A stretch of DNA of 64,000 nucleotides from NCBI GenBank assembly GCA_051294905.1, contig CM119371.1, forward strand, positions 22,010,001 through 22,074,000, in the 5' to 3' direction. Source of the stretch: Botryllus schlosseri (Eukaryota). Position 1 is the first letter of the stretch. Each line of letters opens with the position of its first letter. Under the pieces are notes generated by a model that was given only the letters and a program-made list of their open reading frames with translations, did no database searches and was not told the origin of the DNA. Below are positions 13,450-59,696 of this stretch, one piece after another. The position numbers and the translations under genes are program-made.

Positions 13450-14673
13450 CTAATCTTCCAGGGATCTAACACTCATAGGCCTTGACTCGGTATGTGTATG
13501 TCCATGTCTTTTCAAGGAAGCAAGCAGGCTAAACGCTTTTCCGCAGATCTGACATGCATATATTTTGACTCCGGCATGTGTATTTTCATGTATTTTCAAC
13601 TGAGAATGCTGCCTAAAGGCTTTTCCGCAGACCTGGCACACATAGTTTTTGACTCCAGTATGTGTATTTCCATGTGTTTTCAAGTGACTAAGCTGGCTGA
13701 ACGCTTTTCCGCAGATCTGACATATATATTGTTTGACTCCGGTATGTATATGTCCATGTGTCTTCAAGTTGCCAAGCATGGCAAACGCTTTTCCACAGAT
13801 CTGACACTCATAATTTTTGAATCCAGTGTGTATATTTTCATGTCGTTTCAAGTCACCAATCTGGGTAAACACTCTTCCGCAGATCTGACATGCATACGTT
13901 TTGACTCCAGTATGTGTCTTTTCGTGTTTTTTCATGTCATCATGCCGGATAAATGCTCTTCCGCATATCTGACATGCATATTGTTTGACTCCAGTATGTG
14001 TATTCTGATGTGTTTTCAAGTTACTGATCTGATTAAACACTTTTCCACAAATCTCACATTCATAGTTTTTGACTCCAGTATGTATATTTCCATGTGTTTT
14101 CAAGTTACCAAGAAGGGTAAACGCTTTTCCGCAGATCTGACATGTATAGTTTTTGACTCCGGTATGTGTATTTCTGTGTCTTTTCAAGTCACCGTGCTGA
14201 GTAAACGCTTTCCCACATATCTCACACTCATAGTTTTTGACTCCCATATGTGCATTCAAGTGTGTCTTCAAGTTACCGAGGGATGTGAATGCTTTTCCGC
14301 AGATCTGACATGTGTAGTCTTTTATTCCAGTGTGAATATGCATGTGTCTTGTTAAATGTCTATTGAAGTTACCGATCCAAATAAACTTTCTGCCACAGAT
14401 ATCACATTCATGGCCTTTCACTCCATTATGTGTATTTCTATGTATCTTCAAATCCCTGCTCCCAATACACTTTTCGCCACAGACATCACATTCATGGTCG
14501 TCGAAAACAGTGTGAACTGTTCGATGTGCTCTCAATGCAGCCGTTGTAGAATAGGCTTTACCACAGATATCACATTCATCTTTCCTCGCTTCAATGTGGG
14601 ATTGCAGGTGAGTTTTCATTTCGCCACGACGATGGACGCATTTCCCACAGATCCAACACTTTTTTCTGGTCAT
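13450..14673 (-). CDS. tandem C2H2 zinc-finger protein, subfamily T, 407 aa, 14 fingers
   Basis: Open frame of C-x2-C-x12-H-x3-H units with HTGVKNYxC linkers; candidate 3' splice acceptor (ttcag) at 14812-14811; in-frame TGA 9 codons upstream of the ATG. Confidence 0.9.
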   Translation of the reverse strand: MTRKKCWICGKCVHRRGEMKTHLQSHIEARKDECDICGKAYSTTAALRAHRTVHTVFDDHECDVCGEKCIGSRDLKIHRNTHNGVKGHECDICGRKFIWIGNFNRHLTRHMHIHTGIKDYTCQICGKAFTSLGNLKTHLNAHMGVKNYECEICGKAFTQHGDLKRHRNTHTGVKNYTCQICGKAFTLLGNLKTHGNIHTGVKNYECEICGKVFNQISNLKTHQNTHTGVKQYACQICGRAFIRHDDMKKHEKTHTGVKTYACQICGRVFTQIGDLKRHENIHTGFKNYECQICGKAFAMLGNLKTHGHIHTGVKQYICQICGKAFSQLSHLKTHGNTHTGVKNYVCQVCGKAFRQHSQLKIHENTHAGVKIYACQICGKAFSLLASLKRHGHTHTESRPMSVRSLED

Positions 14674-15889
14674 TCTTGCGGATGAATGTAATCTACTCCA
14701 TCAAGCGTCACACAATAACACCGACAGTTCTTTGTCCAATACCGGATTTTGTGTTCTTGCAATCCAAAGGCTATTGCGTAGTATGATACTTGTTATAATA
14801 TAACATTAGTCTGAATCGCAATATCATCAGAGAACAAGTTATTCAATGACGGATCAGTCTAATGATGAAAGAATTATAATAATTTCTAGAATCACCAACA
14901 TATGACATATTGATAGGCGTTACCTCGAATATATCTCAGCATTGTAATAATCTGTAACCAGACACATTGTTATGAAATAATCGACACATTTTTCGCTAGG
15001 CTGCAATTGCGGAGAATAAACAAATTTTCAGAACAGGGTGATCTTGAAGGAATCTGGTAACTTGGCTGGAATAATTTAAATTTTCAGAATATATCGTAGA
15101 TGACCGAATTTCAACTCTGTATTTGTTGGAAATTGTCGATGCATATGCTGAATTATAAGATAGCCAGTTCTCGTAGGTCATGTGTAAGTCTCAGCTCATT
15201 TAAATGACAAATAATATAGAACCAATTCACAACAAGTAGTACAATTACCATGAATCATTTCATTGCAACCTTGTGTATGATTTGCAATAGAAACACATTC
15301 ATCGCAGAGTCTATGTTCTAAATTTTCCTAGCAATAATGAGTACGTTTAAATATCCCCGCTACGACAGCACAAGTAATGAAATTCGAACCGATGGGTATT
15401 TAGTGAATGGTAAATTTGTGAAAGTCGTGGCCGGCATACTTTTCAACATAAAAATATATCATCTAACATGAATTCCATGTGGTGTACTTCTTGATGTACT
15501 AATCACAAAGACCTGACTCAAAGGAAACGTGACACGAAGTTGATTGAAATCATATCGGGAATGATAGCTCTTTATTATTGATGTCGAAAGTGTTATATTT
15601 CTTCAACTCAAACATTTTTCAATGTATCACTCACAAGATATGAGCCTTGGGTGTGAGTATACTTTTTGGCATGATCTGATCAAGTAAATCGTTGCTGAGT
15701 AGAGAATCGTCACTCAAAAATAGAAGGAGTTGGTGTCCCCCCTTAATTATAAACTCCAGACTTCAAGCCAAACAAGGGTAATTTCTGTATATGAATATTA
15801 GTTTCTTGTTATGAATTGATTTTCAAAAAATATTTTTGTGGGATTTTCAAACGTCAATGAGATCCACAAGAAGGGTAGCTGCGAGCGGC

Positions 15890-16340
15890 AGTTGGGAACT
15901 ACTGGTTTAAACGCTTTTCTGCAGACCTGACATACATAGTTTTTGAATTCAGTATGTGTATTTCCATGTCTTTTCAAGTGCCCAAGCAGGGTAAATGCTT
16001 TCGGTAGATCTGACATGCATACTTTCTGACTCCAGTATGTATATTTCCATGTGTTTTCCACACAAACGATTTACCACAGATCTGACAGTCATGGATTTTG
16101 ACTCCAACGTGAGCAGCAATATGATCTGTTAAAGATGTCTTCCTAGTGAAAGACTTCCGACACATCTCACATTGATACTTTACTTCCGTTTGTGTATCCA
16201 GATGTCTTTTCGCGTGACCGATCGGATTATAATCTTTGACAATGACCTTGCATTCATGATTTTCCAAAACAGTGTGGGACAGTAAATGTTTTTCAATGTT
16301 GCGATTGTAGTAAAGGCTTTTACAGAGGAAAAATAGCAAT
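15890..16340 (-). pseudogene. truncated, frameshifted C2H2 ZF remnant (subfamily A)
   Basis: Finger fragments (CEMCRKSFTRKTSLTDHIAAHVGVKIHDCQICGKSF) spread over several frames; 5' part deleted. Confidence 0.8.
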
Positions 16341-18019
16341 AACGGTTCAGTTTGATAAAATACAAAATCCAATCAATACAGGAATAACAATCATATGATA
16401 GCTTAATAGGCTACCAGTTTGGTTGGATTTGCTAGGCATCGTAATGATGAATAAGCAGACAATTCGGACAGTTACCAATTTAGAACAGTTGTTCCAGATA
16501 GATTATTGATTCTCAAACTGGGATCCGTGGTCCGTTTCAAAAATTCAAATGATCGAGGAAATTTTTTAAAAAGCAATTTTTTAAAAGTGTGTCGAGCGAT
16601 TCAAGATTCCAATACGTGCAAAATTGGGTACACAGTTTATGATATTGGATATGATATCAACGTCCGCTATCGTTTTTACCATTATGCAAACTCCTTATGG
16701 AATTAGACAGATTAGATTTGTCTGATCTAAACTCCTGAACAGTGACGTGCTGTCAAATGAGGCAGGTGAGGTATTGCCTTACCTGTCGTCAGGGTGAGCA
16801 AGAGAAAATTGTGAAAACCCTCAATGATAATTGATATTTTTCATCGATATTCATAAATAACTAAATTGTGAACATTGTTTTCACCCAACATCATCAATTT
16901 GCATAATTATTATTCAAAAATACATCGCGAAAGGAGAGGCGAGGCACGGGCGGGTCGTGACTCACCTGCGACAATGCAATTCATCATAAACAGCTCGGGA
17001 TTCATAATAATTGGTCTCAGTCAAATGCTGTCGTCGTACTGATTCCGAAAACCCAAATATTAACAGTCTCATAGCATCAGAACCCCTCAAAATGATCAAG
17101 GAATGTGAAATTCGGCTTTATTACAGACGATGCCATACAGCACTTGGACAATCTAAGCACAGTGAAGCGCGCTATCGATTTCGAGAAAACAACAGTCTTG
17201 TAGGACTTGTTTAGTAGCGACGGCCAATACGTAATGTGGAGAAAATACATTTCCAACTGATGTATAGCTGATATGTTCTGGCAAAATTGCGAGAGTATGG
17301 AAAAAATTTTCATCTCATATTTGGAAATTTCCATACTATACCATACATGTAGTTTCCCCTATTCCATACTGAAATTTCGTTCCATACCATATCAAACCAT
17401 GACCTAGCTTTATTGAATCTGATTTGTGCAGTGCGAGCCAAATATCACAGGTGCTAATCATACGATGTAATTTGAATGTTACAGCAACAGGAAAAATACT
17501 AACATTCTCATCTAGAAACAGATAAGTGAGAAAAAACGACGTATACCAAGAATTTCCGTGGCAGCTATAATGGACGTATGCAAGAGGCTTAGTGACACGA
17601 AGATACCAGCCCACCAGCATTTCTACAATCTTAGCCCAGTAATCATACAGCCGGAAAGCTTATCCATAGATATATGCGCTGTGTACTTGTTAAGATTTGA
17701 TCCTAATATTAAATCATATTGATATGGTGGCAGTTTTGTTCTTATGACAGTGTCATGTTCAAGATAATCATCACCAAACGGAACCGACTCGTTTTTCGCT
17801 ATTTTTCTGCTCATTCCCAAGTAGTATAAAATTGATGTATCAGCAGGAACAATCAACATTTAAATGCAATACCGTTTTGCAGCATGGCAACACAAAGGTT
17901 TCGAAACATTCCATATGTCTGAATGAAATATTTGTCAATCTGACAATTCATTAAATGTAAGGTGTTAACGATGCAAAAATTTCAAGATATGTGATGTATC
18001 CTGTGTTCAATAAAATGTG

Positions 18020-18918
18020 CTTTCAGCTAGAATGGCACTCCAGATATATCCCACAATTTATTGTCACCTCTGGCATGATATTCACACATCTCCTTAAAAT
18101 ACTGGTGAGTAAGTAAACGCTTTCCACGAGTCCAACACTCATATTTTCTGACACCGGTTATGTGCATTTTCATATGGCTTCTAGTGACCAAGCCGGATAA
18201 ACGCTTTCCTGTAGACCTGACAGTCATAGTTTCTGATTCCAGTATGTATGTTGCCATGTGTTTTCAAGTGATCAAGCCGGCTGAACGCTTTTCCGCATAT
18301 CTGACATGCATAGCATTTGACTCCGGCATGTGCAATTTCATGTCTTTTCACGTGACCGTGCCGTGTAAATGCTTTTCTGCACGTCTGAAATTCATAGTTT
18401 TTTACTCCTGTATGTGTATACTAATGTATTTTCAAGTTATTGAGTTGACTAAAACCTCTTCCACATATCTCACATTCATAGTTCTTGACTCCGGTATGTG
18501 TATGTCCATGTCTTTTGAAGTCAACAAGATGGGTAATCGCTTTTCCGCAAATCTGAAATGCATACTTTTTGACGCCAGTATGTGCATTTCCATGTGTTTT
18601 CAGGTGGCCGAGCCTCACAAACAAATTTCCACAGATATGACAATCGTGGTTTTTGACTCCAAGGGGAGAAGTATGTGTATATGCATGTATTTTCGAGTGA
18701 CAATTCAGATTGTCCTCTTTGCCAATGGTCATACATTCATTATTTTTCAAACCAGTGTGAGATAGCGTATGTTTTTTCAGTGTAGCGATTGCAGCAAAGG
18801 CTTTTCAGCAGATCTCACATTCAGTATTTCCATCTATAAGGTGGAATCGCAAGTGGGTTTTCAAACCGTCATGACGATGGAAGCTCATTCCACAGAGCCA
18901 GCACATCTTCTTCGTCAT
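18020..18918 (-). pseudogene. C2H2 ZF pseudogene (subfamily A)
   Basis: Starts MTKKMCWLCGMSFHRHDGLKTHLRFH; premature TGA at 18807-18805 in finger 2, further stops and shifts downstream; acceptor at 19059-19058. Confidence 0.9.
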
Positions 18919-19174
18919 CTTTCTGGAATTTCTGTATATCACTTTAATTCATCAAGCATCGCGCATGAACCGCTCTCTGTTTGAAAACGAGTACTCAACG
19001 ATAGCTTGGAATGAGCTATTAAAGAGTACTATAATTCTTGTATTATAGCAACCTTGTCTGAAACACAGAGGATAAATCGCAATATTGAATAAGTTTGATA
19101 AATTACAAAATCCAACCAATACATGAATAAAAACATAATAAATATTATTATTTGTTAAGTTGAATTTTTGTAAT

Positions 19175-19195
19175 TGTAATGATCGGTAATCAGAT
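19175..19195. promoter_or_regulatory. conserved ~21-bp motif upstream of ZF coding exons (representative copy; nine copies in the window)
   Basis: TGTAATGATCGGTAATCAGAT-like motif at 14943, 16440, 19175, 34693, 42958, 47965, 49181, 59949 and 63178; function inferred only. Confidence 0.4.
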
Positions 19196-20289: not shown

Positions 20290-22250
20290 AGGGATCCCCT
20301 TCAGGTTGGCTTTGTAAGGATGCTGCATACTGCATACTGGCAGAACACCATATCAGACCATAAGGAGCTGCCAGTTGTAGCGCTAAGATACTCTAGCAAT
20401 CTGAACGAAACAGAATGTTAAGGAGTGAAAATGTCAATAAGTTGTGTGAAATGGATGGCAGAAACAAGCACATATTTACAAGATAGTTACTACACTGAAA
20501 CTTATAATGAAATCGAACCTAAAGTACACCGACTGCTAATTATGAGAGAATATGGGAATGGATATGTAGCCTACTTGCAGATTGAAATGTTTGTGCAACG
20601 AACATAAGCATTAGCTCATCACACTGTGATACAAAAATTTTAACATCCACATCAAACTGCTTTGTTCTGGTCTGCTCTGTTTTATTGAAGCAGATTGGTG
20701 CAGTGCAAACCAGATTTTTCAGTTAGTAAGCATACACTTTCATTTAAATGTGAAGGAGAGGCACTCATATTCACGTAGTGAAACAAGTGAGTATGTAGTG
20801 GTAAAAAGACCAAAGACACGTAACCATTAGTTCAATATCATCCCAGAAATTAGGCGTCCCAAAATGGTGCTCCATAGATATATGTGCTACATGATAGTAC
20901 ATATTTCATTGCAATATTAAATCAAATTTATGTGCAGGCAGAGTGAATGGACGATGCCACTGAGTAACGGCATATTTTACTATTGGCTATCCAATGTTAC
21001 TGTATAACGGTATATTAAAAATTATCATCACGGATATCATCTATTCCTTGCTCCTTCATTTCAAAGTTGTTTTAAATTTGTGTGTCAACAGTAACATCCA
21101 GCAGCTAAATGCGGAAACGGTTCTTCAGCTCGAACACACAAACGATTCGAAGCATTTAGTATGAAAGTATGAAACATTTATCTGACAATTTATCAAATAC
21201 AAAATGTTAACGATGGTTGCTGATTCAAAAAGTCTAGTACATTGGATGCATCTTGTGTTCACGAAAACTCGGTTCTCGCTGTAATGACTTTTCATAGATA
21301 TCACAGAAACACCGTACTTGCTACCTCTAGCATGAATATACAGTGGACACGATCCATACATGTTCTAAAATTAACACTGGTGAATAGTAAGTAAGCGCAT
21401 TTCAGCAGATCTGACATGCATAGTTTTTGAGCCCAATATGTATATTTTCATGTATTTCCAAGTTACCAAGCAGGGTAATAGCTTTTTCGTGGACCTGACA
21501 CTCATAGTCTTTGCCTCCAGTATGTGTATTTCCATAGGTTTTGAAGTCACTAAGCTGGATAAACACTTTTCCGCAGATTTGATATTCATTAGTTTGTGAA
21601 TCCGGTATGTGCATTATCATGTGCTTTCAAGTCATTGAGCAGGGTAAACGGCTTTCTGCAGATCTGCCATGCATAGTTTTCGACAACAGTATGTGCATTT
21701 CCATGTATTTCCAAGTTACCAAGCCATGTAAACGCTTTTCTGTAGATCTGAAATGCATTAGTTTCTGATTCCGGTTTAAGTTACTGAGCCACGTAAACGG
21801 TTTTCCGCAGATCTGCCATGCGCAGTTTTTGACTCCGATGTGCGCATTTCCATGTATTTTCAAGTGAAAAAGCCGTTTATACGGTTTTCCGCCGACCTGA
21901 CACTCATTGTTTTTGACTCCAATATGTTTATTTCGATATGTTTTCAGATCAACAAGCCGGTTAAACGCTTTTCCGCAGCTTTATCCTGCAAATGCTTCGA
22001 ATCCAGTATGTGTATGTCCGTGTAATTTCAAGTGATCAAGCTGGCTAAACGTTTTCCTGCTGATCTGCAACGCATAGCTATCGACTCCAGTAAGAGTATT
22101 TCCATTTCCTATCAAGTTGGCAAGTCTGGTAAACGCTTTTCCATAGACCTGACACTCAGTTTTTGACTCGAGCATGTGTATTTTCATGTGTTTTCAGGTG
22201 ATGAAGCATGCTAAACGCTTTTCCGCAGATCTGACATGCATAGTTTTTTA
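20290..22250. repeat. segmental duplication unit, paralogous to 31175-33100
   Basis: Collinear alignable sequence (gggatcccc...aaggatgctgcatactg through the degenerate finger tail) with scattered substitutions and indels. Confidence 0.9.
21260..22247 (-). pseudogene. degenerate finger tail downstream of the 22248-23445 array
   Basis: About ten 84-bp finger units with stops and frameshifts (short ORFs 21371-21589, 21402-21620, 21627-21863, 21981-22187). Confidence 0.85.
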
Positions 22251-23445
22251 CTCCATATGTGTATTGCCATGTCTTCTCAAGTTCGAAAGGTGGCTAAATG
22301 TTTTTCCGCAGATCTGACATGCATAGTTTTTTACTCTAGTATGTGTATAAACATGTGTTATTAAGCACGAATGCTGGCCAAATTTTTTTCCGCAGATCTG
22401 ACATGCATATTGTTTGACTCCAGTATGTGTATGGCAATGTGTTTTCAAGTCATGAAGCTGGCTAAACGCTTTTCCGCAGATCTGACATGCATAGTTTTTG
22501 ACTCCAGTATGTGTATTTTCATGTCTTTTCAAGTCGTGAAGCTGGCTGAATGCTTTCGCGCAGATCTGACATTCATAGTTTTTGACTCTTGTGTGTGTAT
22601 TTTCATGTTTTTTCAAATCAGAACGCCGGGTAAATGCTTTTCCGCAGATGTGACATTCATAGTTTGTGACTCCGGTATGTGTAATCCCATGTGTTTTCAA
22701 GTTACCGATCTGACTAAATGCTTTTCCGCATATCTCACACTCATAGTTTTTGACTCCAGTATGTGTATTTTCATGTCTTTTCAAGCCGTGAAGCATGCTA
22801 AACGCTTTTCCGCAGATCTGACATGCATAGTTTTTGACTCCAGTATGTGTATTGCCATGTCTTCTCAAGTTCGAATGCTGGCTAAATGTTTTTCCGCAGA
22901 TCTGACATGCATAGTTTTTTACCCCAGTATGTGTATTAATATGTGTTTTTAAGCACCAATGCCGGCCAAATTTTTTTCCGCAGATCTGACATGCATATTG
23001 TTTGACTCCGGTATGTGTATGGCAATGTGTTTTCAAGTCATGAAGCTGGCTCAACGCTTTTCCGCAGATCCGACATGCATAGTTTTTGACTCCAGTATGT
23101 GTATTTTCATGTCTTTTCAAGTCGTGAAGCCGGCTAAATGCTTTTGCGCAGATCTGACATTCATAGTTTTTGACTCCTGTGTGTGTATTCTCATGTTTTT
23201 TCAAATCATAACGCCGGGTAAATGCTTTTCCGCAGATGAGACATTCATAGATTGTGACTCCGGTATGTGTAATCCCATGTGATTTCAAGTTACCGATCTG
23301 ACTAAATGCTTTTCGGCATATCTCACACTCATGGTTTTTGACTCCAGCATGTGTATTTCCATGTTCTTTCAAGCTGCTATGCTGAGTAATTGCTTTTCCA
23401 CATAATTCACATTCATACTTTTTGATTCCAGTATGTATATCTCCA
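22248..23445 (-). pseudogene. 5'-truncated C2H2 ZF gene, 14 intact fingers in open frame, native start removed by the Penelope-like insertion
   Basis: Open frame 22248-23456; the first codons derive from the antisense PLE; 588-bp (7-finger) internal duplication. Confidence 0.85.
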
Positions 23446-23467
23446 TCACCCATCACTGAAATTCACC

Positions 23468-24349
23468 ATGGAAAAAGAGGTTAATAATTCATTAGCATTC
23501 CTTGATGTTGTAGTGGAAAAGACGGGTGCTAATTTTGTTACATCAGTTTACCGTAAGCCTACATTCAGTGGGCAATACATTTCGTGGGATTCTTTCTGTC
23601 CAGTAAAACGTAAAGTAAATTTGATAAGAACTCTGGTACACAGGGCTCTGATGATTTGTAGTAAAGTCAAACTTGATTCTGAATTGGAGAACATTCGGTC
23701 AATCTTTCAGTCAAATGGTTATCCCGATCATATCATTAAAATGACCATAGATCGTAAACTCAAAGATTTCAGAAAAGTTAAACCGTTTGGACCTAGAAAA
23801 TGTCCTGTTTATTTGCATCTTCCTTGGATTGGGAAAGTGTCCAACAGGTTTGAAAAACAAATTAAATCGTCAGTGAGCCATTGTTTTTCACAAGTAGAAC
23901 CTCAGATAATCTTCATGACGAAATCTCTGATGCCTGCAACGCAAAAGGATGTGCTACCTGCGACAAATCAAAGCAACATAATATATGAATACACGTGCCG
24001 ATGTGAGAGTCGGTATGTAGGTCGCACGTCTCAGCGCTTGCAGCAAAGAATTCGCCAGCATGTCCCACGGCAAATTAGAATAAATAATGTTTCTCCAACT
24101 CCTTCATCGCAGTCTGTTGACACACTGCGTGATTATGATCAAGTTACTGCTTGTAATTCGGCTATTGGACAGCATCTCTTATCCCATCCAGAATGTGCTG
24201 ATCATTACAATGACAGTCAATTTTCTATACTCGCTCGTGGCCGTTCTCTTTTTCATTTAAAGGTCCTGGAATCTACGATCATAAAGCTACGAAAGCCGAT
24301 TCTCTGTCGCCAGAAGGAACGCCTCTACACTCTTGGAATATTTCATTAA
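23468..24349 (+). CDS. 5'-truncated PLE ORF (RT thumb + GIY-YIG endonuclease)
   Basis: Identical to the C-terminal 293 aa of the full ORFs. Confidence 0.85.
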   Translation: MEKEVNNSLAFLDVVVEKTGANFVTSVYRKPTFSGQYISWDSFCPVKRKVNLIRTLVHRALMICSKVKLDSELENIRSIFQSNGYPDHIIKMTIDRKLKDFRKVKPFGPRKCPVYLHLPWIGKVSNRFEKQIKSSVSHCFSQVEPQIIFMTKSLMPATQKDVLPATNQSNIIYEYTCRCESRYVGRTSQRLQQRIRQHVPRQIRINNVSPTPSSQSVDTLRDYDQVTACNSAIGQHLLSHPECADHYNDSQFSILARGRSLFHLKVLESTIIKLRKPILCRQKERLYTLGIFH

Positions 24350-24522
24350 TGTTATGTGTTGTGTTTTCGGTTATTTGTAACCGAATATGTACTCGTTAAC
24401 GTTTGTTTTGTACCGTTACTACCGTATCTAGCCCGTCTACTAGTTGTTTGTTTTTGTTATTATTACGTCATACAGACAAAATAGTTCTTACATTTCGAAT
24501 TTGATTCACCCCATCACTAACG

Positions 24523-24562
24523 TTCGCTACTGATGAGAGTTAGTCGAAAAGCTTTTAGCGAA
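24523..24562 (+). ncRNA. minimal type I hammerhead ribozyme, copy 1
   Basis: TTCGCTA-CTGATGA-GA gttag TC-GAAA-AGCTT-T-TAGCGAA: 7-bp stem I, CUGAUGA and GAAA cores, 2-bp stem II, palindromic stem III (AAGCTT); predicted cleavage after 24555. Confidence 0.9.
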
Positions 24563-24574
24563 TAAATTAACAAT

Positions 24575-27127
24575 ATGAAGTTATTGTTTCGCGTTATTCT
24601 GAAGTTCTGTACCACAAATCACTTGTTCAAATACTTTCGCAAAAGGTACAGTGACCAACAATTGGAGATCCTTAATAAGTTGGTCAGAACTCGGGGGAAA
24701 ATTCGAAATCTACGGTATCATGTAGCCTTTCTTAAGGCTTGTATAAAGAAAAGAGTTGTACCAAAGTTTCTGAAGACGAGGATAGAGAAATCGCGTGCTC
24801 GCATCAACTCCAGGATTGAGAGTGCATTTTTACATGATGAGATCGAGAACAGCGTAAAAGAGATGAGTACCGTAACTCAACGTTGTGCCAAGCTTAAGCA
24901 GCAGGCAGTGCAGTTTTTATCTTATTTTGACCTGATACGGTTTTGTCGTTATATGGCCAAAATTGATGCACGTAAAGAGGATGAGAAGGTACGGCAGAAT
25001 GAGCGTAACATCAACTTGCTTCTCAAGACACGATACGGTACCAAGGCAGTTGCTGGTAGTAAGGTTATTACCAACTTATCGGACTATGAGCTGAGTGACA
25101 CAGAAGAGTTGGTACTATCCCTTGGTCTTGATTTTTCTGTGCCACCGACAGAAATCAAGCGTGAGGAAGTCTTTGCTGAATTTGAGGTATTACTTGGACA
25201 ATTGTCACATCATCACCAGAAATTTGATGATGAAAGCAGAGCTAAGGAACACAGTGAGAAAATTGTGGCCCTTAAAGCCAAACTAAGTAGCTTAGCGCAT
25301 GGTTTTTGTGGAACTCCAATCGACAGAAGTGATTTCACGATGACGTCCGATTGTTACAGGAGCATCAGATCCCTGAAATCCAATAAGTCAATTCACATAA
25401 CCAAACCTGATAAAGGATCTGGTGTAGTCATTTTGAATAAGTGTGACTACATTTCTAAAATGGATTCAATTCTCGGCGACAAGTCTAAATTTGAAATCCT
25501 TGGCCCTGCGTGTGACAATGACAACACCTCCAAGATAGAAGCTCGTATTCAGCGTCTACTATTGACCCTCAAGAAGGCGGGAAAAATCTCTTCTGCTGAA
25601 TACGACGACATCAGACCCACTGGCTCTATTCGACCACGTATGTATGGTCTTCCGAAGACCCATAAATCGAATGTACCCTTACGTCCGATACTATCGATGG
25701 TTGGATCAGCGTATCACAAAGTCGCGAAGTGGATTGCAAGATATCTTGAGCCGGTGAGTTTGTTCTATGGTGGTAACTGCATTCGTGACTCGTTCACATT
25801 TGCTGATACCATTCGTAATGTTGATCTCGATGAGTCCGAAATCTCTATGTGTTCGTTTGATATATCTAGTTTATTCACGAACGTGCCAGTTCAAGAGACT
25901 ATAGAGATTTGTGCCAATGAGCTCTATGGTGGTGTCCTTCCATCTCCTCCATTCTCAAGGTCTTCTTTTGTTAAATTAATGCGATTGATCACTTGTGATG
26001 TCGAATTTAGTTTCAATAACACCATATATACACAGATCGATGGTGTTGCAATGGGATCGCCGCTTGGTCCCATTCTGGCTAACATTTTTGTGGGGTATTA
26101 CGAAAAACGGTTATTCGAAGATATTGATCGACCATTAATGTATCAAAGATATGTTGATGACACCTTCGCCATATTTGAAAATGAATCCCAGTGTGATTTG
26201 TTTCTGAGCAAATTGAATGGTCTTCACCCATCACTGAAATTCACCATGGAAAAAGAGGTTAATAATTCATTAGCATTCCTTGATGTTGTAGTGGAAAAGA
26301 CGGGTGCTAATTTTGTTACATCAGTTTACCGTAAGCCTACATTCAGTGGGCAATACATTTCGTGGGATTCTTTCTGTCCAGTAAAACGTAAAGTAAATTT
26401 GATAAGAACTCTGGTACACAGGGCTCTGATGATTTGTAGTAAAGTCAAACTTGATTCTGAATTGGAGAACATTCGGTCAATCTTTCAGTCAAATGGTTAT
26501 CCCGATCATATCATTAAAATGACCATAGATCGTAAACTCAAAGATTTCAGAAAAGTTAAACCGTTTGGACCTAGAAAATGTCCTGTTTATTTGCATCTTC
26601 CTTGGATTGGGAAAGTGTCCAACAGGTTTGAAAAACAAATTAAATCGTCAGTGAGCCATTGTTTTTCACAAGTAGAACCTCAGATAATCTTCATGACGAA
26701 ATCTCTGATGCCTGCAACGCAAAAGGATGTGCTACCTGCGACAAATCAAAGCAACATAATATATGAATACACGTGCCGATGTGAGAGTCGGTATGTAGGT
26801 CGCACGTCTCAGCGCTTGCAGCAAAGAATTCGCCAGCATGTCCCACGGCAAATTAGAATAAATAATGTTTCTCCAACTCCTTCATCGCAGTCTGTTGACA
26901 CACTGCGTGATTATGATCAAGTTACTGCTTGTAATTCGGCTATTGGACAGCATCTCTTATCCCATCCAGAATGTGCTGATCATTACAATGACAGTCAATT
27001 TTCTATACTCGCTCGTGGCCGTTCTCTTTTTCATTTAAAGGTCCTGGAATCTACGATCATAAAGCTACGAAAGCCGATTCTCTGTCGCCAGAAGGAACGC
27101 CTCTACACTCTTGGAATATTTCATTAA
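24575..27127 (+). CDS. PLE reverse transcriptase / GIY-YIG endonuclease, 850 aa
   Basis: KPDKG, YGLPKTHK..PLRPI, SFDISSLFTNVP, GVAMGSPLGP, YVDD, AFLDV, VYRKPT RT motifs; IIYEYTCRCESRYVGRT..L..RI.QH GIY-YIG motif. Confidence 0.95.
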   Translation: MKLLFRVILKFCTTNHLFKYFRKRYSDQQLEILNKLVRTRGKIRNLRYHVAFLKACIKKRVVPKFLKTRIEKSRARINSRIESAFLHDEIENSVKEMSTVTQRCAKLKQQAVQFLSYFDLIRFCRYMAKIDARKEDEKVRQNERNINLLLKTRYGTKAVAGSKVITNLSDYELSDTEELVLSLGLDFSVPPTEIKREEVFAEFEVLLGQLSHHHQKFDDESRAKEHSEKIVALKAKLSSLAHGFCGTPIDRSDFTMTSDCYRSIRSLKSNKSIHITKPDKGSGVVILNKCDYISKMDSILGDKSKFEILGPACDNDNTSKIEARIQRLLLTLKKAGKISSAEYDDIRPTGSIRPRMYGLPKTHKSNVPLRPILSMVGSAYHKVAKWIARYLEPVSLFYGGNCIRDSFTFADTIRNVDLDESEISMCSFDISSLFTNVPVQETIEICANELYGGVLPSPPFSRSSFVKLMRLITCDVEFSFNNTIYTQIDGVAMGSPLGPILANIFVGYYEKRLFEDIDRPLMYQRYVDDTFAIFENESQCDLFLSKLNGLHPSLKFTMEKEVNNSLAFLDVVVEKTGANFVTSVYRKPTFSGQYISWDSFCPVKRKVNLIRTLVHRALMICSKVKLDSELENIRSIFQSNGYPDHIIKMTIDRKLKDFRKVKPFGPRKCPVYLHLPWIGKVSNRFEKQIKSSVSHCFSQVEPQIIFMTKSLMPATQKDVLPATNQSNIIYEYTCRCESRYVGRTSQRLQQRIRQHVPRQIRINNVSPTPSSQSVDTLRDYDQVTACNSAIGQHLLSHPECADHYNDSQFSILARGRSLFHLKVLESTIIKLRKPILCRQKERLYTLGIFH

Positions 27128-27300
27128 TGTTATGTGTTGTGTTTTCGGTTATTTGTAACCGAATATGTACTCGTTAACGTTTGTTTTGTACCGTTACTAC
27201 CGTATCTAGCCCGTCTACTAGTTGTTTGTTTTTGTTATTATTACGTCATACAGACAAAATAGTTCTTACATTTCGAATTTGATTCACCCCATCACTAACG

Positions 27301-27340
27301 TTCGCTACTGATGAGAGTTAGTCGAAAAGCTTTTAGCGAA
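27301..27340 (+). ncRNA. minimal type I hammerhead ribozyme, copy 2
   Basis: Identical to 24523-24562, +2778. Confidence 0.9.
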
Positions 27341-27352
27341 TAAATTAACAAT

Positions 27353-29905
27353 ATGAAGTTATTGTTTCGCGTTATTCTGAAGTTCTGTACCACAAATCAC
27401 TTGTTCAAATACTTTCGCAAAAGGTACAGTGACCAACAATTGGAGATCCTTAATAAGTTGGTCAGAACTCGGGGGAAAATTCGAAATCTACGGTATCATG
27501 TAGCCTTTCTTAAGGCTTGTATAAAGAAAAGAGTTGTACCAAAGTTTCTGAAGACGAGGATAGAGAAATCGCGTGCTCGCATCAACTCCAGGATTGAGAG
27601 TGCATTTTTACATGATGAGATCGAGAACAGCGTAAAAGAGATGAGTACCGTAACTCAACGTTGTGCCAAGCTTAAGCAGCAGGCAGTGCAGTTTTTATCT
27701 TATTTTGACCTGATACGGTTTTGTCGTTATATGGCCAAAATTGATGCACGTAAAGAGGATGAGAAGGTACGGCAGAATGAGCGTAACATCAACTTGCTTC
27801 TCAAGACACGATACGGTACCAAGGCAGTTGCTGGTAGTAAGGTTATTACCAACTTATCGGACTATGAGCTGAGTGACACAGAAGAGTTGGTACTATCCCT
27901 TGGTCTTGATTTTTCTGTGCCACCGACAGAAATCAAGCGTGAGGAAGTCTTTGCTGAATTTGAGGTATTACTTGGACAATTGTCACATCATCACCAGAAA
28001 TTTGATGATGAAAGCAGAGCTAAGGAACACAGTGAGAAAATTGTGGCCCTTAAAGCCAAACTAAGTAGCTTAGCGCATGGTTTTTGTGGAACTCCAATCG
28101 ACAGAAGTGATTTCACGATGACGTCCGATTGTTACAGGAGCATCAGATCCCTGAAATCCAATAAGTCAATTCACATAACCAAACCTGATAAAGGATCTGG
28201 TGTAGTCATTTTGAATAAGTGTGACTACATTTCTAAAATGGATTCAATTCTCGGCGACAAGTCTAAATTTGAAATCCTTGGCCCTGCGTGTGACAATGAC
28301 AACACCTCCAAGATAGAAGCTCGTATTCAGCGTCTACTATTGACCCTCAAGAAGGCGGGAAAAATCTCTTCTGCTGAATACGACGACATCAGACCCACTG
28401 GCTCTATTCGACCACGTATGTATGGTCTTCCGAAGACCCATAAATCGAATGTACCCTTACGTCCGATACTATCGATGGTTGGATCAGCGTATCACAAAGT
28501 CGCGAAGTGGATTGCAAGATATCTTGAGCCGGTGAGTTTGTTCTATGGTGGTAACTGCATTCGTGACTCGTTCACATTTGCTGATACCATTCGTAATGTT
28601 GATCTCGATGAGTCCGAAATCTCTATGTGTTCGTTTGATATATCTAGTTTATTCACGAACGTGCCAGTTCAAGAGACTATAGAGATTTGTGCCAATGAGC
28701 TCTATGGTGGTGTCCTTCCATCTCCTCCATTCTCAAGGTCTTCTTTTGTTAAATTAATGCGATTGATCACTTGTGATGTCGAATTTAGTTTCAATAACAC
28801 CATATATACACAGATCGATGGTGTTGCAATGGGATCGCCGCTTGGTCCCATTCTGGCTAACATTTTTGTGGGGTATTACGAAAAACGGTTATTCGAAGAT
28901 ATTGATCGACCATTAATGTATCAAAGATATGTTGATGACACCTTCGCCATATTTGAAAATGAATCCCAGTGTGATTTGTTTCTGAGCAAATTGAATGGTC
29001 TTCACCCATCACTGAAATTCACCATGGAAAAAGAGGTTAATAATTCATTAGCATTCCTTGATGTTGTAGTGGAAAAGACGGGTGCTAATTTTGTTACATC
29101 AGTTTACCGTAAGCCTACATTCAGTGGGCAATACATTTCGTGGGATTCTTTCTGTCCAGTAAAACGTAAAGTAAATTTGATAAGAACTCTGGTACACAGG
29201 GCTCTGATGATTTGTAGTAAAGTCAAACTTGATTCTGAATTGGAGAACATTCGGTCAATCTTTCAGTCAAATGGTTATCCCGATCATATCATTAAAATGA
29301 CCATAGATCGTAAACTCAAAGATTTCAGAAAAGTTAAACCGTTTGGACCTAGAAAATGTCCTGTTTATTTGCATCTTCCTTGGATTGGGAAAGTGTCCAA
29401 CAGGTTTGAAAAACAAATTAAATCGTCAGTGAGCCATTGTTTTTCACAAGTAGAACCTCAGATAATCTTCATGACGAAATCTCTGATGCCTGCAACGCAA
29501 AAGGATGTGCTACCTGCGACAAATCAAAGCAACATAATATATGAATACACGTGCCGATGTGAGAGTCGGTATGTAGGTCGCACGTCTCAGCGCTTGCAGC
29601 AAAGAATTCGCCAGCATGTCCCACGGCAAATTAGAATAAATAATGTTTCTCCAACTCCTTCATCGCAGTCTGTTGACACACTGCGTGATTATGATCAAGT
29701 TACTGCTTGTAATTCGGCTATTGGACAGCATCTCTTATCCCATCCAGAATGTGCTGATCATTACAATGACAGTCAATTTTCTATACTCGCTCGTGGCCGT
29801 TCTCTTTTTCATTTAAAGGTCCTGGAATCTACGATCATAAAGCTACGAAAGCCGATTCTCTGTCGCCAGAAGGAACGCCTCTACACTCTTGGAATATTTC
29901 ATTAA
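27353..29905 (+). CDS. PLE reverse transcriptase / GIY-YIG endonuclease, 850 aa, second identical copy
   Basis: Translation identical to 24575-27127. Confidence 0.95.
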   Translation: MKLLFRVILKFCTTNHLFKYFRKRYSDQQLEILNKLVRTRGKIRNLRYHVAFLKACIKKRVVPKFLKTRIEKSRARINSRIESAFLHDEIENSVKEMSTVTQRCAKLKQQAVQFLSYFDLIRFCRYMAKIDARKEDEKVRQNERNINLLLKTRYGTKAVAGSKVITNLSDYELSDTEELVLSLGLDFSVPPTEIKREEVFAEFEVLLGQLSHHHQKFDDESRAKEHSEKIVALKAKLSSLAHGFCGTPIDRSDFTMTSDCYRSIRSLKSNKSIHITKPDKGSGVVILNKCDYISKMDSILGDKSKFEILGPACDNDNTSKIEARIQRLLLTLKKAGKISSAEYDDIRPTGSIRPRMYGLPKTHKSNVPLRPILSMVGSAYHKVAKWIARYLEPVSLFYGGNCIRDSFTFADTIRNVDLDESEISMCSFDISSLFTNVPVQETIEICANELYGGVLPSPPFSRSSFVKLMRLITCDVEFSFNNTIYTQIDGVAMGSPLGPILANIFVGYYEKRLFEDIDRPLMYQRYVDDTFAIFENESQCDLFLSKLNGLHPSLKFTMEKEVNNSLAFLDVVVEKTGANFVTSVYRKPTFSGQYISWDSFCPVKRKVNLIRTLVHRALMICSKVKLDSELENIRSIFQSNGYPDHIIKMTIDRKLKDFRKVKPFGPRKCPVYLHLPWIGKVSNRFEKQIKSSVSHCFSQVEPQIIFMTKSLMPATQKDVLPATNQSNIIYEYTCRCESRYVGRTSQRLQQRIRQHVPRQIRINNVSPTPSSQSVDTLRDYDQVTACNSAIGQHLLSHPECADHYNDSQFSILARGRSLFHLKVLESTIIKLRKPILCRQKERLYTLGIFH

Positions 29906-30078
29906 TGTTATGTGTTGTGTTTTCGGTTATTTGTAACCGAATATGTACTCGTTAACGTTTGTTTTGTACCGTTACTACCGTATCTAGCCCGTCTACTAGT
30001 TGTTTGTTTTTGTTATTATTACGTCATACAGACAAAATAGTTCTTACATTTCGAATTTGATTCACCCCATCACTAACG

Positions 30079-42707: not shown

Positions 42708-43439
42708 TCTTCCAGCATATGTGGAAATTAATTCTTCAAGCCTCACACCTCAATGGTTCTTTTTTCATCGATTTCCAACACTTGTATGGACAATTGCCGT
42801 TCTACTGTGCAGTATTTGAATTGTTATCATAGAATAGCAATCTGCAAAGCAATGTGAGAACAAATAAAATGTTTACCGATCAGTTCGAAAAAAAATCATC
42901 ATTCCAAAATAATAAAAATGATAATTAATATCATTGTCGTTGAACATATTTCAGCATCGTAATGATCAGTAACCAGATAATTAGGATATTGACCACTACG
43001 GATGTTCAACACATATTTTGAACATCGTGAATCCCATTTCTCATATTTGCCTAGGACAGGCGTTGGGAAAATGTATAGATGAATCACACGGCATATCTCG
43101 TAATTGTACATTTTGACTCAAGTCAGGTCAAGTCAAGTCACTCGATTTTCGGAGGTGACTCGAATTATTGAAGTAGCCGACAAGGCATTGTAATTTGCAA
43201 AATTATTGAAGTACTAATTGAGTCAGCATTCATTCATAACACCGGTCAACACAATTTTTGTTGGCCTTTATCAACACCTTTTTTAGTGACTTTTTGGCGC
43301 TGAATTAAAAAATGGCTTTCATTTTTCTCTATCACGTCAAGTTTTTGGGTTAGGCCCTTACCACATTGTCTCAAAAATCCAACATAATAGTACTACTTTT
43401 AATATTTTGTGTTTATTGTATAAAACGTTTCAAATCCAC

Positions 43440-47539: not shown

Positions 47540-47736
47540 GCACAGATTTTACAATTATGGTTTTTCACTCCAGTATGTGTATTTCAATGTCTTTTCAAGT
47601 CGCAAAGCCAGGCAAACGCTTTCCCACAGATCTCACATTCGGTATTCCTATATTTAAGGTGGAATTGCAAATGAGTTTTCAATCCGTCATGACAATGGAA
47701 GCTCTTTCCACAGATCCAACACATATTGTTTGTCAT
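47540..47736 (-). pseudogene. ZF remnant subfamily A (two fingers then stop)
   Basis: MTNNMCWICGKSFHCHDGLKTHLQFHLKYRNTECEICGKAFAWLCDLKRH*; acceptor at 47871-47870. Confidence 0.85.
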
Positions 47737-48733
47737 TCTTCTGGATTATCTGTAAATTACTTCTTCAACTACACACATTAATCTATCTCTGATTGAAAAT
47801 GAATATTTACCAATAGCTTGTAATAAGCTATTAAATTGTATTATAATTCTTATATTATAGCAACCCAGTCTGAACACACAGAGGATAGATTGCAATAATG
47901 AATTATATTTACAATTATAATTACAAAATCCAACAAATACAAGAATACAAGAATTTTTAGGCATTGTAATGATCGGTAATCAGATAATTCAGACGGTAGT
48001 TCCATATAGATATTTCGCCTAGATTTTGGAGATCACAATTACATTTCTATTTCCCTTTCGGAAATTTGCTTTGGACAGAACATTTGCTATGTTCAGGTTT
48101 CAACTAGACCGTCTGATAGAATTCAACTGCAAGACACTGAACCGTAAAGTTACTCTGCCTTCAGCAAGTCCATCGGATGACTTACTATTACATTCCAAAC
48201 AGTTCTGGACCAACTGTGACATTATCATCACGGTTCGGCTGGGTGTTTAGGGACGAACATCTGGTTCGGAGTAAGCACCTGGCTCTGGTCACGTTAAACA
48301 CCAGCACCAATAGCACCAGCCGACAGAGGATTGTGTTTGACAATATCTTGGAGACCAGTTGTTCTTCAACATTTTTCACCACGACCCAAATCTAAGTGGT
48401 TTTGCCATTTTGCTTTCCAAGACTTGCTAATAGAAATGAATACATGTCAAATGCTAGCATGCTACACTTTATACTAGCATGTATGAAATATCGAAGGTGC
48501 GCACAGCCAGCTGTATGCAACAGAATTCTATGAAACATGTTTCATTACAATACCAATAATAGTCGTTGAAGTCACATGATATCCATCATTCAGGAAACGC
48601 TGTCAAAGATCTCACATCCATTCCTGTCGTAAATGTTCTTTCCATCAATCAAGAAATTGCGATAAAGTTATCCCCACAGATCTGAAATTCTGCTTTCTCT
48701 CTTGTGAGTTGTTGAGATTTCATTCCGCCGTTA

Positions 48734-48937
48734 CTATTGAAGCTTTTCCACAGATCGAATATATCTTAAACCAGTGTGAGCTGTTCGATGTGTTTTCATC
48801 ACAAACATTGCAGTGAAGGCTCCCTCACGGATATCACATTCATCTTTTCTCTCATCAATGTGGTATTGCAGGTGAGTTTTGATTTCGCAATGACCATTGA
48901 TACATTTCCCACAGATCCAACAAGTCTTATTTGACAT
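48734..48937 (-). pseudogene. ZF remnant subfamily T (67-aa ORF)
   Basis: MSNKTCWICGKCINGHCEIKTHLQYH...; acceptor at 49052-49051. Confidence 0.8.
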
Positions 48938-49269
48938 TCTTCAAGGTTACATGTAACATGCTTCTTCAAGCATTACACATCAACAGTTCTTTTCCCCGTA
49001 ATGATTATTGTATCTTTATTGCGCAGTGTTGTTATATTATATACATATGTCTGAAAAGCAATATCATCAGAGAAATCTAATCAATGACGCATCAGTTTGA
49101 TGATGAAAAAAATATAATTAATTCCAGAATTATCAACATATGATATATTGATAGGCATTTTCCCGAATACATGTCAGCATTGTAATGATCTGTAACCGGA
49201 CACGTAGGTAGTTATGAAGTAATCGACGCATTTTTCGTTGCGTTGCATTTGCAGAGAACGAGCAAATTC

Positions 49270-55267: not shown

Positions 55268-55590
55268 TTAGTAGTGAAGGTGAGCAGTATGTGTATCCGC
55301 ATGTCTTTTCGAGTGACTGATCAGATTATCCTCTTTGGTAATGAGCTTGCATTCATGATTTTTAAAATCAGGGTCAGATAGTATATGTTTTTTCAGTGTA
55401 GCGATTGCAGCAATGGCTTTTCCGCAGATCTCACATTCGGTATTTCTATCTACAACGTGGAATCGCAAGTGAGCTTTCAATCCGTCAGGACGATGGAAGC
55501 CCTTTTCACACATCGAGCAGATCATCTTCGTCAGTTTTCAGGATTCAGGATGGAAGCTCTTTCCACGGATCCAGCACATCTTCTTTGTCA
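55268..55590 (-). pseudogene. ZF remnant subfamily A
   Basis: CSMCEKGFHRPDGLKAHLRFH...CEICGKAIAAIATLKKHILSD, with a small duplication of the first finger; truncated at a hAT end (cagtggttctcaacct, 55217); acceptor near 55731. Confidence 0.85.
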
Positions 55591-56574
55591 TTCTTCTAGA
55601 TTATCTGCACATTACTTTACTTCTTCAAGCATATCACAGCAACCGTTCTCAGCTTGAAAACGAGTATTCAACGATAGCTTGGAATGAGCTATAACATAGT
55701 ATTATAGTTCTTATATTATAGCAACCCAGTCTGAAATACAGAAGAAATTAGCAATAACGAAGCAGATCATGAATAAAAAGATCCAAGAATAACAAACATA
55801 TGACTTCAACTTGAAAAGAAATTGATACTGATATGCGCAAATTGCTAATGACCAGAGAATATGCTAAAATGGATATCACTGGTCATCACATATTTTGGTG
55901 TCAAGAAAGTTTCAATTGATTTAGCGTAATTGCATGTTGCTGAATCGAAAAAGGAATTCCGAATTGGCTCAATTTTTTGAGATATTCTATATTTTATTAA
56001 AAAAAAACTGCTAAATATACCGAATTTTGACGAAGGTGAATTTTTTTTTCAACAACTTTGACGAATCTATATCTGTCTTCAAGCATGTGTATACCGTATT
56101 CTTCTAGTTCTGAAGCGATATAGTTTAACACGCAATCGGTAACACAGATATCCTTGTAAATGGGAATCATGTTTCACGTGAAGATCAAGCAAAAACTAGG
56201 CGATATTAGCAGTAAACAAACACAGCTGACGTCAAAGCACAAGCACTACTTTTTGTAACCCTCGAAGTACATTTAGTAAGGTGTCAAAAAAAAGAACCTT
56301 ACACAGTTATTGAACTACGATATAGCTTTAAAATGATATATTGATGTCATGTGATAACTGTAGGGAGTACTCGACATTGTAGATATGATTAACAATACAA
56401 AGAAACTGCATCTTATCAGAATATTGCTTATACTTTTATCCTACGATCGCCTGATTTACTGTATGATGCTGTACAGTTTGTAGAAAGCTGAGGAAATCAC
56501 TCATAGCGGTAGAGATATAGAGAACAGAAAACAGAGAACAGAAAATATTGGGTATAGGCTGCAGCTCAATATCT

Positions 56575-56714
56575 TGTGCAGTCATTGCAGTGAAGGCTTT
56601 CCCACAGATATCACATTCATCTTTTCTCTCTTCGTTGTGGAATTGCAGGTGAGTTTCAATTTCGCCAGGACCATTGACGCATTTCCTACAGATCCAACAA
56701 GTCTTTTTAGGCAT
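56575..56714 (-). pseudogene. ZF remnant subfamily T (finger 1 and half of finger 2)
   Basis: MPKKTCWICRKCVNGPGEIETHLQFHNEERKDECDICGKAFTAMTA then unrelated sequence; paralog of 35005-35201. Confidence 0.85.
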
Positions 56715-57869: not shown

Positions 57870-58523
57870 GAGACCTGGTCTATTAAATGTACCCTTGCAA
57901 TTAAACGTTTTACCGCAGATCTTGCATGCAAAGTCTTTCACAGTTTGACTGCAGTGTGATTAATCATTATATGATGCTAACTTTGCCATTCTGACAACGG
58001 ACTTCCCACAGATCTCTCAAGCGTATTTTTTTTTGGCTCCAATGGTCTTTCAGTAGGCCGAGAGGAGTAAACGCTTTGCCACAGTTCACACGGTCATGAT
58101 TTTTGAAACCACTGTGTGTTATTAGATGAGTTTTCAATGAAGAGTTCGCAGTGAAAGCTACACTATATACCTCACATTTACAGTTTTCAACTCTGTATTC
58201 GTACTCGTACTTGTGTATTCGTATTACTTTTAATTGGCTAATCTGTGTAAACACTTTGCAACAGATCCCACACTCAGTTTTTGAGTCCGGTGTTTACTAG
58301 AATATGATGCTCTATGTTTGTCTTTGAAGCGAAAGACATTCCACATATTCCACATTCATGGTTCTTGAAACCGGTGTGGATCATGAGATGTACCTTTGTA
58401 GCGAAGGACTTAACACACATCTCAGATTCACAGTTTTTCACTCCAGTGTATATTCTCATGTTGTTTCAAGTCACTCTTCGCAGTGAACACTTTCTCACAG
58501 ATCAAACATTCATAATTTCTTAC
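57870..58523 (-). pseudogene. degenerate finger tail of the 58524-59696 gene
   Basis: Frameshifted finger module sharing lesions with 39850-40540. Confidence 0.85.
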
Positions 58524-59696
58524 TCAAGTATGTCTATTCATATGTCTCTTCAAGTGATGAAGCCGACTAAACGCTTTCCCGCAGGCCTCACATCCATAGT
58601 TCTTAACTTCAATGTGAATATCAAGGTGGGCAGCTAAAGATTGCTTCGTAAGACCGGACTTCCCGCAGATCTCACATGCGTAGTTTCTAGCTCTAAGATG
58701 TGTGTTCCAATGGTTTTTCAACATGTCGACAGAAGTAAACGCTTTGCCACAGATCATACAGTCATAATTTTTGAAATCACTGTGGGTTAAAAAATGTGTT
58801 TTCAATGAAGACTTCACAGTAAATGCTTTACCACACACTTCACATTTATAGTTACTGACTCCGTCATGTGTATTCGTGTGAGTTTTCAATTGGCCAATCT
58901 CTGTAAACACTTTGCCACAGATCCCGCACTCATAGTTTTTTACTCCAGTGTGAACTCGCATGTGACGCTCTAAATTCGTCCTTGAAGTTAACGACTTACC
59001 ACATATTTCACATTCATGATTCTTGAAACCAGTGTGGATCATCATGTGTGTCTTTAATGAATGCTTCTCAGTTAAGGTTTTACCACAGATCTCACAATCA
59101 TGACTTTTGCTTCCTGTATGTGTATTCTGATGTTTTTTCAAGTCACTCATCCTCATAAAAGTCTTACCACATATCCAACATTCATAGTTTTTTATTCCAG
59201 TATGTATATACATATGCTGTTTCAAGTTGGTGATCCGACTGAAGGCTGTACCACAGATCTCACATTCGCAACTTCTGATACTGTGAATATGAATGTGTTT
59301 TGCCAAATATTGCTTTGTAGCAAAAGACTTTCCACACATGCCACATTCATAGTTTTTCACTGCAGTGTGTGTATTCGCATGTCTCGTCAATGCTGCATTG
59401 TCAGAGAATGATTTTGCACAGATATCACATTTGTGGTTTCTGACTCCAATGTGAATATGAATGTGTCTTGCTAAGTGCGGCTTAGTAGCAAATGACTTCC
59501 CACAGGTCTCACATTCGTGGAATTCGACACTGGTATGTCTGTAAACATGTCTTTTCAAGCCAACAATTGAAGTGAATGCTTTTCCACAGATTTCACATTC
59601 GGCTTTTTTCTCATCAATGTGGAATCGCAGGTGGCTTTTCATTCCACCATAACGATCAAAGATTCGTCCACAGATCGAACATTGGATTTTTCTCAT
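58524..59696 (-). CDS. tandem C2H2 zinc-finger protein, subfamily R, 390 aa from the first ATG, 14 fingers
   Basis: Open frame MRKIQCSICGRIFDRYGGMKSHLRFH...; the ORF-track start at 59735 is a GTG preceded by an in-frame TGA; acceptor (ttgcag) at 59831-59830. Confidence 0.9.
   Translation of the reverse strand: MRKIQCSICGRIFDRYGGMKSHLRFHIDEKKAECEICGKAFTSIVGLKRHVYRHTSVEFHECETCGKSFATKPHLARHIHIHIGVRNHKCDICAKSFSDNAALTRHANTHTAVKNYECGMCGKSFATKQYLAKHIHIHSIRSCECEICGTAFSRITNLKQHMYIHTGIKNYECWICGKTFMRMSDLKKHQNTHTGSKSHDCEICGKTLTEKHSLKTHMMIHTGFKNHECEICGKSLTSRTNLERHMRVHTGVKNYECGICGKVFTEIGQLKTHTNTHDGVSNYKCEVCGKAFTVKSSLKTHFLTHSDFKNYDCMICGKAFTSVDMLKNHWNTHLRARNYACEICGKSGLTKQSLAAHLDIHIEVKNYGCEACGKAFSRLHHLKRHMNRHT

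Follow-up and report, generated by a model that had tools for sequence, protein, structure and literature searches.

We know of no KRAB-ZFP family in ascidians, the sister group of vertebrates. The closest described systems are the KRAB clusters of vertebrates, the ZAD-ZNF genes of insects, and the FiNZ-ZNF genes of cyprinids. Wells et al. report that the numbers of zinc-finger (ZNF) genes and of retroelements correlate across metazoans independently of accessory domains, and that dozens of ZNF families are uncharacterised (PMC10547256). Here, we analyze a stretch of 64,000 nucleotides (nt) from Botryllus schlosseri (contig CM119371.1, positions 22,010,001 to 22,074,000), which we call the window and which carries a tandem cluster of genes and gene remnants for poly-C2H2 zinc-finger proteins. 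A first-pass annotation of the window had proposed three intact genes without an effector domain, about ten dead copies, and birth-and-death evolution. In our reading, which we hold with a probability of about 70%, this is a lineage-restricted cluster of self-contained, finger-only genes that grows and dies by ordinary turnover.

Finger arrays and the three open genes

Searching with the pattern C..C.{12}H.{3,4}H returns 91 strict C2H2 fingers on the minus strand and none on the plus strand, while shuffled sequences average 0.15. The finger content is made up of 14 gene-derived units. Three of them have open reading frames (ORFs) and are named T, A, and R; the other 11 (p10, p16, p18, A′, p35, R′, p47, p48, p55, p56, and p62) are dead or fragmentary, so the earlier estimate of dead copies rises by one in our recount. 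All features given below lie on the minus strand unless marked (+), and positions are those of the window.

By Pfam, the products of T, A, and R contain C2H2 families only (PF00096 and PF13465, E values of 1e-72 to 1e-95, 11–14 stretches per protein), and all three have the tandem C-x2-C-x12-H-x3-H fingers (zf-C2H2 and zf-H2C2_2) that define a poly-C2H2 protein. The linker consensus of the arrays is T-G-V-K-N-Y. The first Cys is residue 6 in each of the three proteins; that is, the ORFs begin five residues ahead of finger 1, exactly as the first-pass annotation had stated.

Gene T (13450–14673) has an open ORF of 407 amino acids (aa) with 14 C2H2 fingers and a terminal frameshifted finger remnant; its C-terminal 'ESRPMSVRSLED' reads as an out-of-frame finger. 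A decayed finger tail lies past the stop (13270–13449), and self-BLAST homology to other arrays extends to 13270. Gene A (33044–34438; 464 aa) has three degenerate N-terminal fingers and 12 good C-terminal fingers, followed past its stop by a dead tail of about nine decayed fingers (32268–33043) that is 95% identical to the tail of A′. Gene R (58524–59696; 390 aa) has 14 fingers. One more in-frame finger is present past its stop, with further decayed fingers in a dead tail (57998–58523), and the stop itself is also present in R′.

Decayed fingers are thus found downstream of each of the three stops, indicating that T, A, and R are shortened forms of once longer arrays, each of them cut by a stop or frameshift. 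The claim that the proteins end at or just past the last finger therefore stands as a reading of the ORFs, with the correction that all three ends are cuts in longer arrays. Likewise, the description of the three genes as intact holds for their open frames, but not for the array of A, in which three fingers are degenerate and finger 1 lacks a zinc ligand.

Exact look-ups of T, A, and R in public protein collections return no match. A whole-protein word search of public collections returns generic zinc-finger proteins only, at 30–51% identity, and a search of 5.8 billion proteins with the N-terminal 60 residues of A finds no relative. Because close relatives are lacking in the public protein collections, the family appears to be new. 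Judged by its sequences, it is a private, lineage-restricted poly-C2H2 family of a well-known kind.

Gene starts and the search for effector domains

The region ahead of the ATG was compared in an alignment of ten gene starts, eight of which were also checked codon by codon for stops. A YAG|A sequence lies behind a pyrimidine tract 113–143 nt (about 134 nt) upstream of the ATG in all ten aligned starts. In most of them, an ACTGAT-like branch-point motif is positioned 38–48 nt above this acceptor. Together, these conserved elements amount to what is predicted to be a complete 3′ splice-site set. The set is kept across the T, A, and R subfamilies, although the adjacent upstream sequence is only 52–60% identical.

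In T, the 5′ untranslated part of the finger exon is 137 nt long (14674–14810), the acceptor CAG is at 14811–14813, and the branch-point-like ACTGAT is at 14853–14858, 48 nt upstream of the exon start. The corresponding untranslated part of A is 134 nt long (34439–34572), with the acceptor CAG at 34573–34575 and AACTGAT at 34605–34611; that of R is 133 nt long (59697–59829), with the acceptor CAG at 59830–59832 and AACTGAT at 59867–59873.

At least one in-frame stop lies between the conserved acceptor and the ATG in eight of eight starts checked. T has a TGA 10 codons ahead of the ATG (9 codons in between), A has a TAA 4 codons ahead (3 in between) and a TGA 15 codons ahead, and R has a TGA 15 codons ahead (14 in between). 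The first-pass annotation had placed the nearest stops 9 (T), 4 (A), and 14 (R) codons upstream, which compares with 9, 3, and 14 codons counted between stop and ATG, and it had put an acceptor upstream of these stops, where the ten aligned starts have their conserved element. The ATG with its AAGA context is kept in nine of the ten starts. Apart from this context (AAGAATG), the interval between the last in-frame stop and the ATG shows no conservation.

Further upstream, a 22-nt motif, TGRTTACNGATCATTACAATGC, has seven matches in the window (zero expected), all of them 234–287 nt upstream of gene starts. The copies are at 14939–14960 (the copy of T), 19171–19192, 42954–42975, 47961–47982, 49177–49198, 59945–59966 (the copy of R), and 63174–63195. 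The motif is a candidate family promoter or start-site element. It is separated from the acceptor by about 100–150 nt, and the aligned starts contain no conserved GT donor between the motif and the branch point. A 3′ splice site ahead of the ATG that has neither a matching donor nor an exon upstream of it is the mark of a gene that is trans-spliced to a spliced leader (SL), and this is the arrangement found here. In Ciona, about half of the genes receive an SL by trans-splicing, and the most common outron length is near 100 bp (PMC4691747). An acceptor without a conserved donor, in a tunicate genome, fits spliced-leader trans-splicing. Most likely, the conserved acceptor receives a non-coding leader, either trans-spliced or contributed by a short non-coding first exon; plausibly, the leader is trans-spliced.

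A unit of the family would accordingly read as follows. The 22-nt motif lies about 270 nt before the ATG. About 100 nt further on comes ACTGAT, followed by the pyrimidine tract and CAG, an untranslated stretch of about 134 nt with its stops, and the ATG. A non-coding leader would be joined at the conserved acceptor, by trans-splicing or from a short first exon, and the whole protein (Met, four residues, and about 14 fingers) would be encoded in one exon.

The stops have a direct consequence for effector domains. Since they lie behind the conserved acceptor, no upstream effector domain could be joined in frame at that acceptor. No domain of this kind is encoded elsewhere in the window either. 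Pfam finds no domain in 20 non-finger ORFs of at least 60 aa, including the ORFs directly upstream of each gene. The word search also supplied 115 zinc-finger proteins, many of which contain KRAB and some SCAN or ZAD. When their N-terminal regions are compared by phmmer with the 2209 six-frame ORFs of at least 20 aa in the window, no match with E ≤ 1 occurs outside the finger arrays. KRAB (PF01352) is absent from the gene products and the 20 neighboring ORFs by Pfam and from the six-frame ORFs by phmmer. The same holds for ZAD and SCAN by both methods, and for BTB by Pfam only. Such searches would miss an exon as short and novel as that of FiNZ, which encodes 28 aa (PMC10547256). Regarding a FiNZ-type N-terminal domain, the genes offer only five residues ahead of finger 1, with stops behind the conserved acceptor. 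That T, A, and R are effector-less is well supported at the sequence level, and the earlier statement that no KRAB, SCAN, ZAD, or BTB exon can be joined in frame is borne out, for the conserved acceptor, both by the stops and by the lack of such a domain in the window.

Selection, turnover, and neighboring elements

Across fingers, the helix positions −1, +1, +2, +3, and +6 are the most variable, with an entropy of 2.7–3.2 bits at −1, +2, +3, and +6. At scaffold positions (Phe 8, Leu 14, and Lys 15, for example), the entropy is about 0.5–1.6 bits; the zinc ligands have 0, a value fixed by the search pattern. Fingers 1 and 2 vary relatively little between subfamilies.

Among T, A, and R, the ratio of non-synonymous to synonymous divergence (dN/dS) of the N-terminal 54 codons is 0.24–0.53 at a dS of 0.7–1.2. 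Between R and R′ it is 0.40 (220 orthologous codons; 13 synonymous and 23 non-synonymous changes). A first R–R′ alignment for this ratio (Ka/Ks) was discarded, as a one-codon deletion and a non-orthologous 5′ part had put the register off. The ratios clearly point to purifying selection on the proteins as proteins for most of their history. Change at the contact positions differs between the two comparisons available. Where A′ has its internal duplication of 7 fingers, 8 of 28 contact residues are changed, versus 11 of 154 other residues (Fisher p = 0.003). R and R′ show no such enrichment (4 of 32 contact positions versus 17 of 188 others, p = 0.52). Contact residues thus appear diversified in at least one array. 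Purifying selection combined with diversified contact residues fits DNA-binding factors and is silent on their target; we infer that the proteins are, or were, sequence-specific DNA binders.

Self-comparison reveals a block of three genes (A-type, T-type, R-type) that repeats about every 21 kb in the part of the window from 33000 to 62961. The units follow one another in the order A–p35–R′, p47–p48, and p55–p56–R, with p62 after them. R′ (39964–42707), a dead paralogue of R, has duplicated about 840 nt of its own sequence and acquired several frameshifts, but its ATG and finger 1 are still recognizable. The flanks of R and R′ are 94–96% identical and the orthologous 660 nt of coding sequence about 94%, whereas identity falls to 70–88% where R′ has its internal duplication. 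A′ (21391–23456) has 15 fingers, with a stretch of 7 fingers duplicated inside the array, and one frameshift; it lacks an N-terminus and an ATG. Between A and A′, identity is 95% over the 3′ flank and dead tail and only 75% over the live array, although one finger of A (A11) matches finger a4 of A′ at 100%. Therefore, the arrays are mosaics that arose by exchange between paralogues.

The cluster would grow by tandem duplication of the A-type/T-type/R-type block, be remodeled within the finger arrays by unequal exchange and conversion, and lose copies by nonsense mutation, frameshift, deletion, and retroelement insertion. Birth-and-death of a finger-only family, the usual mode for such gene families, is supported by the sequences. 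The block duplications, mosaic arrays, dead tails, and one beheaded copy bear out the first-pass annotation on this point.

In p18, p35, R′, p47, p48, p55, p56, and p62, the gene start is recognizable, but the unit is broken by stops or frameshifts or is cut after one or two fingers. The A-type pseudogene p18 (18050–18918) keeps its ATG and finger 1 and has in-frame stops. The T-type start p35 (34999–35201) is truncated, with an ATG, fingers 1 and 2, and then a stop. Four start remnants are of A-type or T-type: p47 (47550–47736; A-type, two fingers and a stop), p48 (48768–48937; T-type), p55 (55277–55591; A-type, start segment duplicated), and p56 (56577–56714; T-type). In p62 (62600–62961), also an A-type start remnant, a mutation has turned the ATG into CTG, and there are stops past finger 2. 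Finally, p16 (15900–16372) is a finger fragment, and p10 (10300–10700) is a finger fragment with stops. For annotation, a single coding exon behind a non-coding leader should serve as the gene model, and 11 of the 14 units should be listed as pseudogenes. ORFs of 122–287 aa that run antisense to the arrays (13492–14355, 18160–18765, 22371–22952, and 33554–33922, all +) are not genes; they are long because the 84-nt repeat has no stops in one reverse frame.

A′ adjoins a concatemer of a Penelope-like retroelement (23446–30150, +; RVT_1 by Pfam), which stands in place of its 5′ end. The concatemer consists of 100% identical 2778-nt units (23446–27372 is 100% identical to 26224–30150) and contains two complete 850-aa ORFs. 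A 100% identical full-length Penelope protein is encoded on a 2808-nt Logan contig of run SRR29245597. Because of this identical full-length protein, the element appears to be very young, and it is perhaps active.

Two ORF fragments, at 30327–30704 (+) and 2504–2689 (+), look by eye like the C-terminal end of ORF2 of a non-long-terminal-repeat retrotransposon. The former has no Pfam match and occupies the place in which one would look for the lost 5′ end of A′. The segment 34700–34900, which separates the truncated p35 from the acceptor of A, has the look of a short interspersed element (SINE) or of a tRNA-derived sequence, with a box-B-like GGTTCAATCG on the opposite strand. This SINE-like identity is unconfirmed, and Rfam and ARAGORN find no RNA families or tRNAs in the whole window, this segment included.

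Alternative readings and comparison with known systems

Reads of one contig run (X1) and three bulk RNA-seq runs were mapped on R and 4.3 kb upstream of it. The RNA sample is small, comprising about 30 million reads from two studies. Run X1 behaves as genomic DNA, with an even low depth that becomes very high on repeats. Against a background of 3–8x in this run, three segments upstream of R have a high depth, 60401–60600 (128x), 62001–62200 (1690x), and 62401–62600 (277x), and correspond to high-copy dispersed repeats. In RNA-seq run X13, a few reads fall on the dead unit p62 (62601–63000) and carry the same variant letters as the X1 DNA contig. These reads suggest low-level transcription of a pseudogene allele that differs from the reference by about 3%.

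Several observations weigh against the reading of finger-only genes in ordinary turnover. R itself has at most 1–2 partly matching reads in the RNA sample, none of them across the acceptor. The first-pass annotation had named lack of transcription as an outcome that would speak against it; the three bulk RNA-seq runs come close to this outcome, for R only. The near-absence of reads is not proof of silence, as the sample is thin and the tissue and stage of the runs are not specified. In addition, the leader of R holds two upstream ATGs, finger 1 of A reads CSIRGK and has lost its second Cys, a zinc ligand, which is a sign of early decay, and AG dinucleotides occur between the last in-frame stop and the ATG in all three genes, making a cryptic acceptor conceivable. 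The trans-splicing of the leader, moreover, depends on the genome being that of a tunicate.

Part of this evidence would be explained if the locus were a graveyard, in which only T, A, and R have so far escaped a disabling mutation and are themselves unexpressed and without function. The near-lack of RNA reads on R, the upstream ATGs of R, and the damaged finger 1 of A all agree with such a state, as do the 11 dead units among 14, the origin of all three open ORFs from truncated longer arrays, and the failure to find an exact or close protein in public collections. However, frames of 390–464 codons persist across a dS of 0.7–1.2, while the dead tails have repeated stops and frameshifts. The dN/dS of 0.24–0.53 argues for constraint, the splice-site elements and the 22-nt motif are conserved amid much more divergent neighboring sequence (52–60% identity), and the RNA sample is small and of unspecified tissue. 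We therefore consider a functionless remnant unlikely. An effector hidden from our searches is far less probable than that, and we give it almost no weight. It would require that a short upstream exon, like the 28-aa exon of FiNZ, use a cryptic acceptor located after the last stop and ahead of finger 1. The AG dinucleotides in that interval are compatible with this, and FiNZ demonstrates that an effector exon can be both too short and too novel for domain searches (PMC10547256). But the interval is only 9–42 nt long and without a pyrimidine tract, no AG near the ATG is conserved, and the conserved acceptor with its branch point and pyrimidine tract sits about 134 nt upstream. The retention of the ATG context in nine of ten starts also argues against it, and no open frame is found in any block conserved between the upstream regions of the paralogues.

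What the finger-only proteins would do is a separate question. They might silence young transposons without an effector, by occupancy or through a finger-encoded surface. The contact residues are hypervariable, with changes enriched there in the A′ duplication, the cluster lies amid high-copy repeats and a very young Penelope element, and the comparatively constant fingers 1 and 2 could serve as a common module; the correlation of ZNF with retroelement numbers across metazoans, which does not depend on accessory domains, points the same way (PMC10547256). However, R is essentially silent in the three RNA-seq runs, the R–R′ comparison lacks an enrichment at contact positions, and the ordinary diversification of transcription factors predicts change at contact residues equally well. 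The idea is reasonable but generic and has no support from the data of the locus; we regard transposon surveillance as quite improbable here. A bolder version, which we rate as a long shot, is that ascidians evolved their own zinc-finger control of repeats, with leader-spliced genes of a single coding exon, a 22-nt promoter motif, and comparatively constant fingers 1 and 2 that recruit silencing factors in place of an effector. If the proteins were expressed and bound repeats, the locus would represent KRAB-independent zinc-finger control of repeats in the closest invertebrate relatives of vertebrates, and a finger array alone could suffice for such control. On present evidence, the locus is a clear, ordinary example of birth-and-death, of use chiefly for annotation, to which the present analysis adds the conserved splice-site set, the 22-nt motif, the three-gene block, the origin of all three stops by truncation, and a near-negative RNA test of R.

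Among the described systems, the cephalopod C2H2 expansion (PMC12513265) resembles the locus in being lineage-specific. The KRAB-less poly-ZFPs of vertebrates, such as those of the Xenopus gastrula XlCGF type, share both the lack of a KRAB domain and lineage-specific expansion. Unlike these two groups, the family described here is private, with generic matches at 30–51% identity. The insect ZAD-ZNF genes are also a lineage-specific tandem C2H2 expansion, but ZAD (PF07776) is missing at the locus. The cyprinid FiNZ-ZNF genes are closer, being lineage-specific and fast-duplicating, placed outside the KRAB clade, and built as a one-exon array behind a splice acceptor (PMC10547256). They differ in that a separate exon ahead of the array encodes a conserved, acidic N-terminal domain of 28 aa (PMC10547256), whereas the locus has stops behind its acceptor. 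The vertebrate KRAB clusters differ in that the genes of the locus have no KRAB exon or other N-terminal domain and use the linker TGVKNY in place of TGEKPY. In organization, however, the two are much alike. Both consist of tandem poly-C2H2 genes with the array in one exon, shaped by block duplication and unequal exchange, with many pseudogenes, variable contact residues, and a transposon-rich setting.

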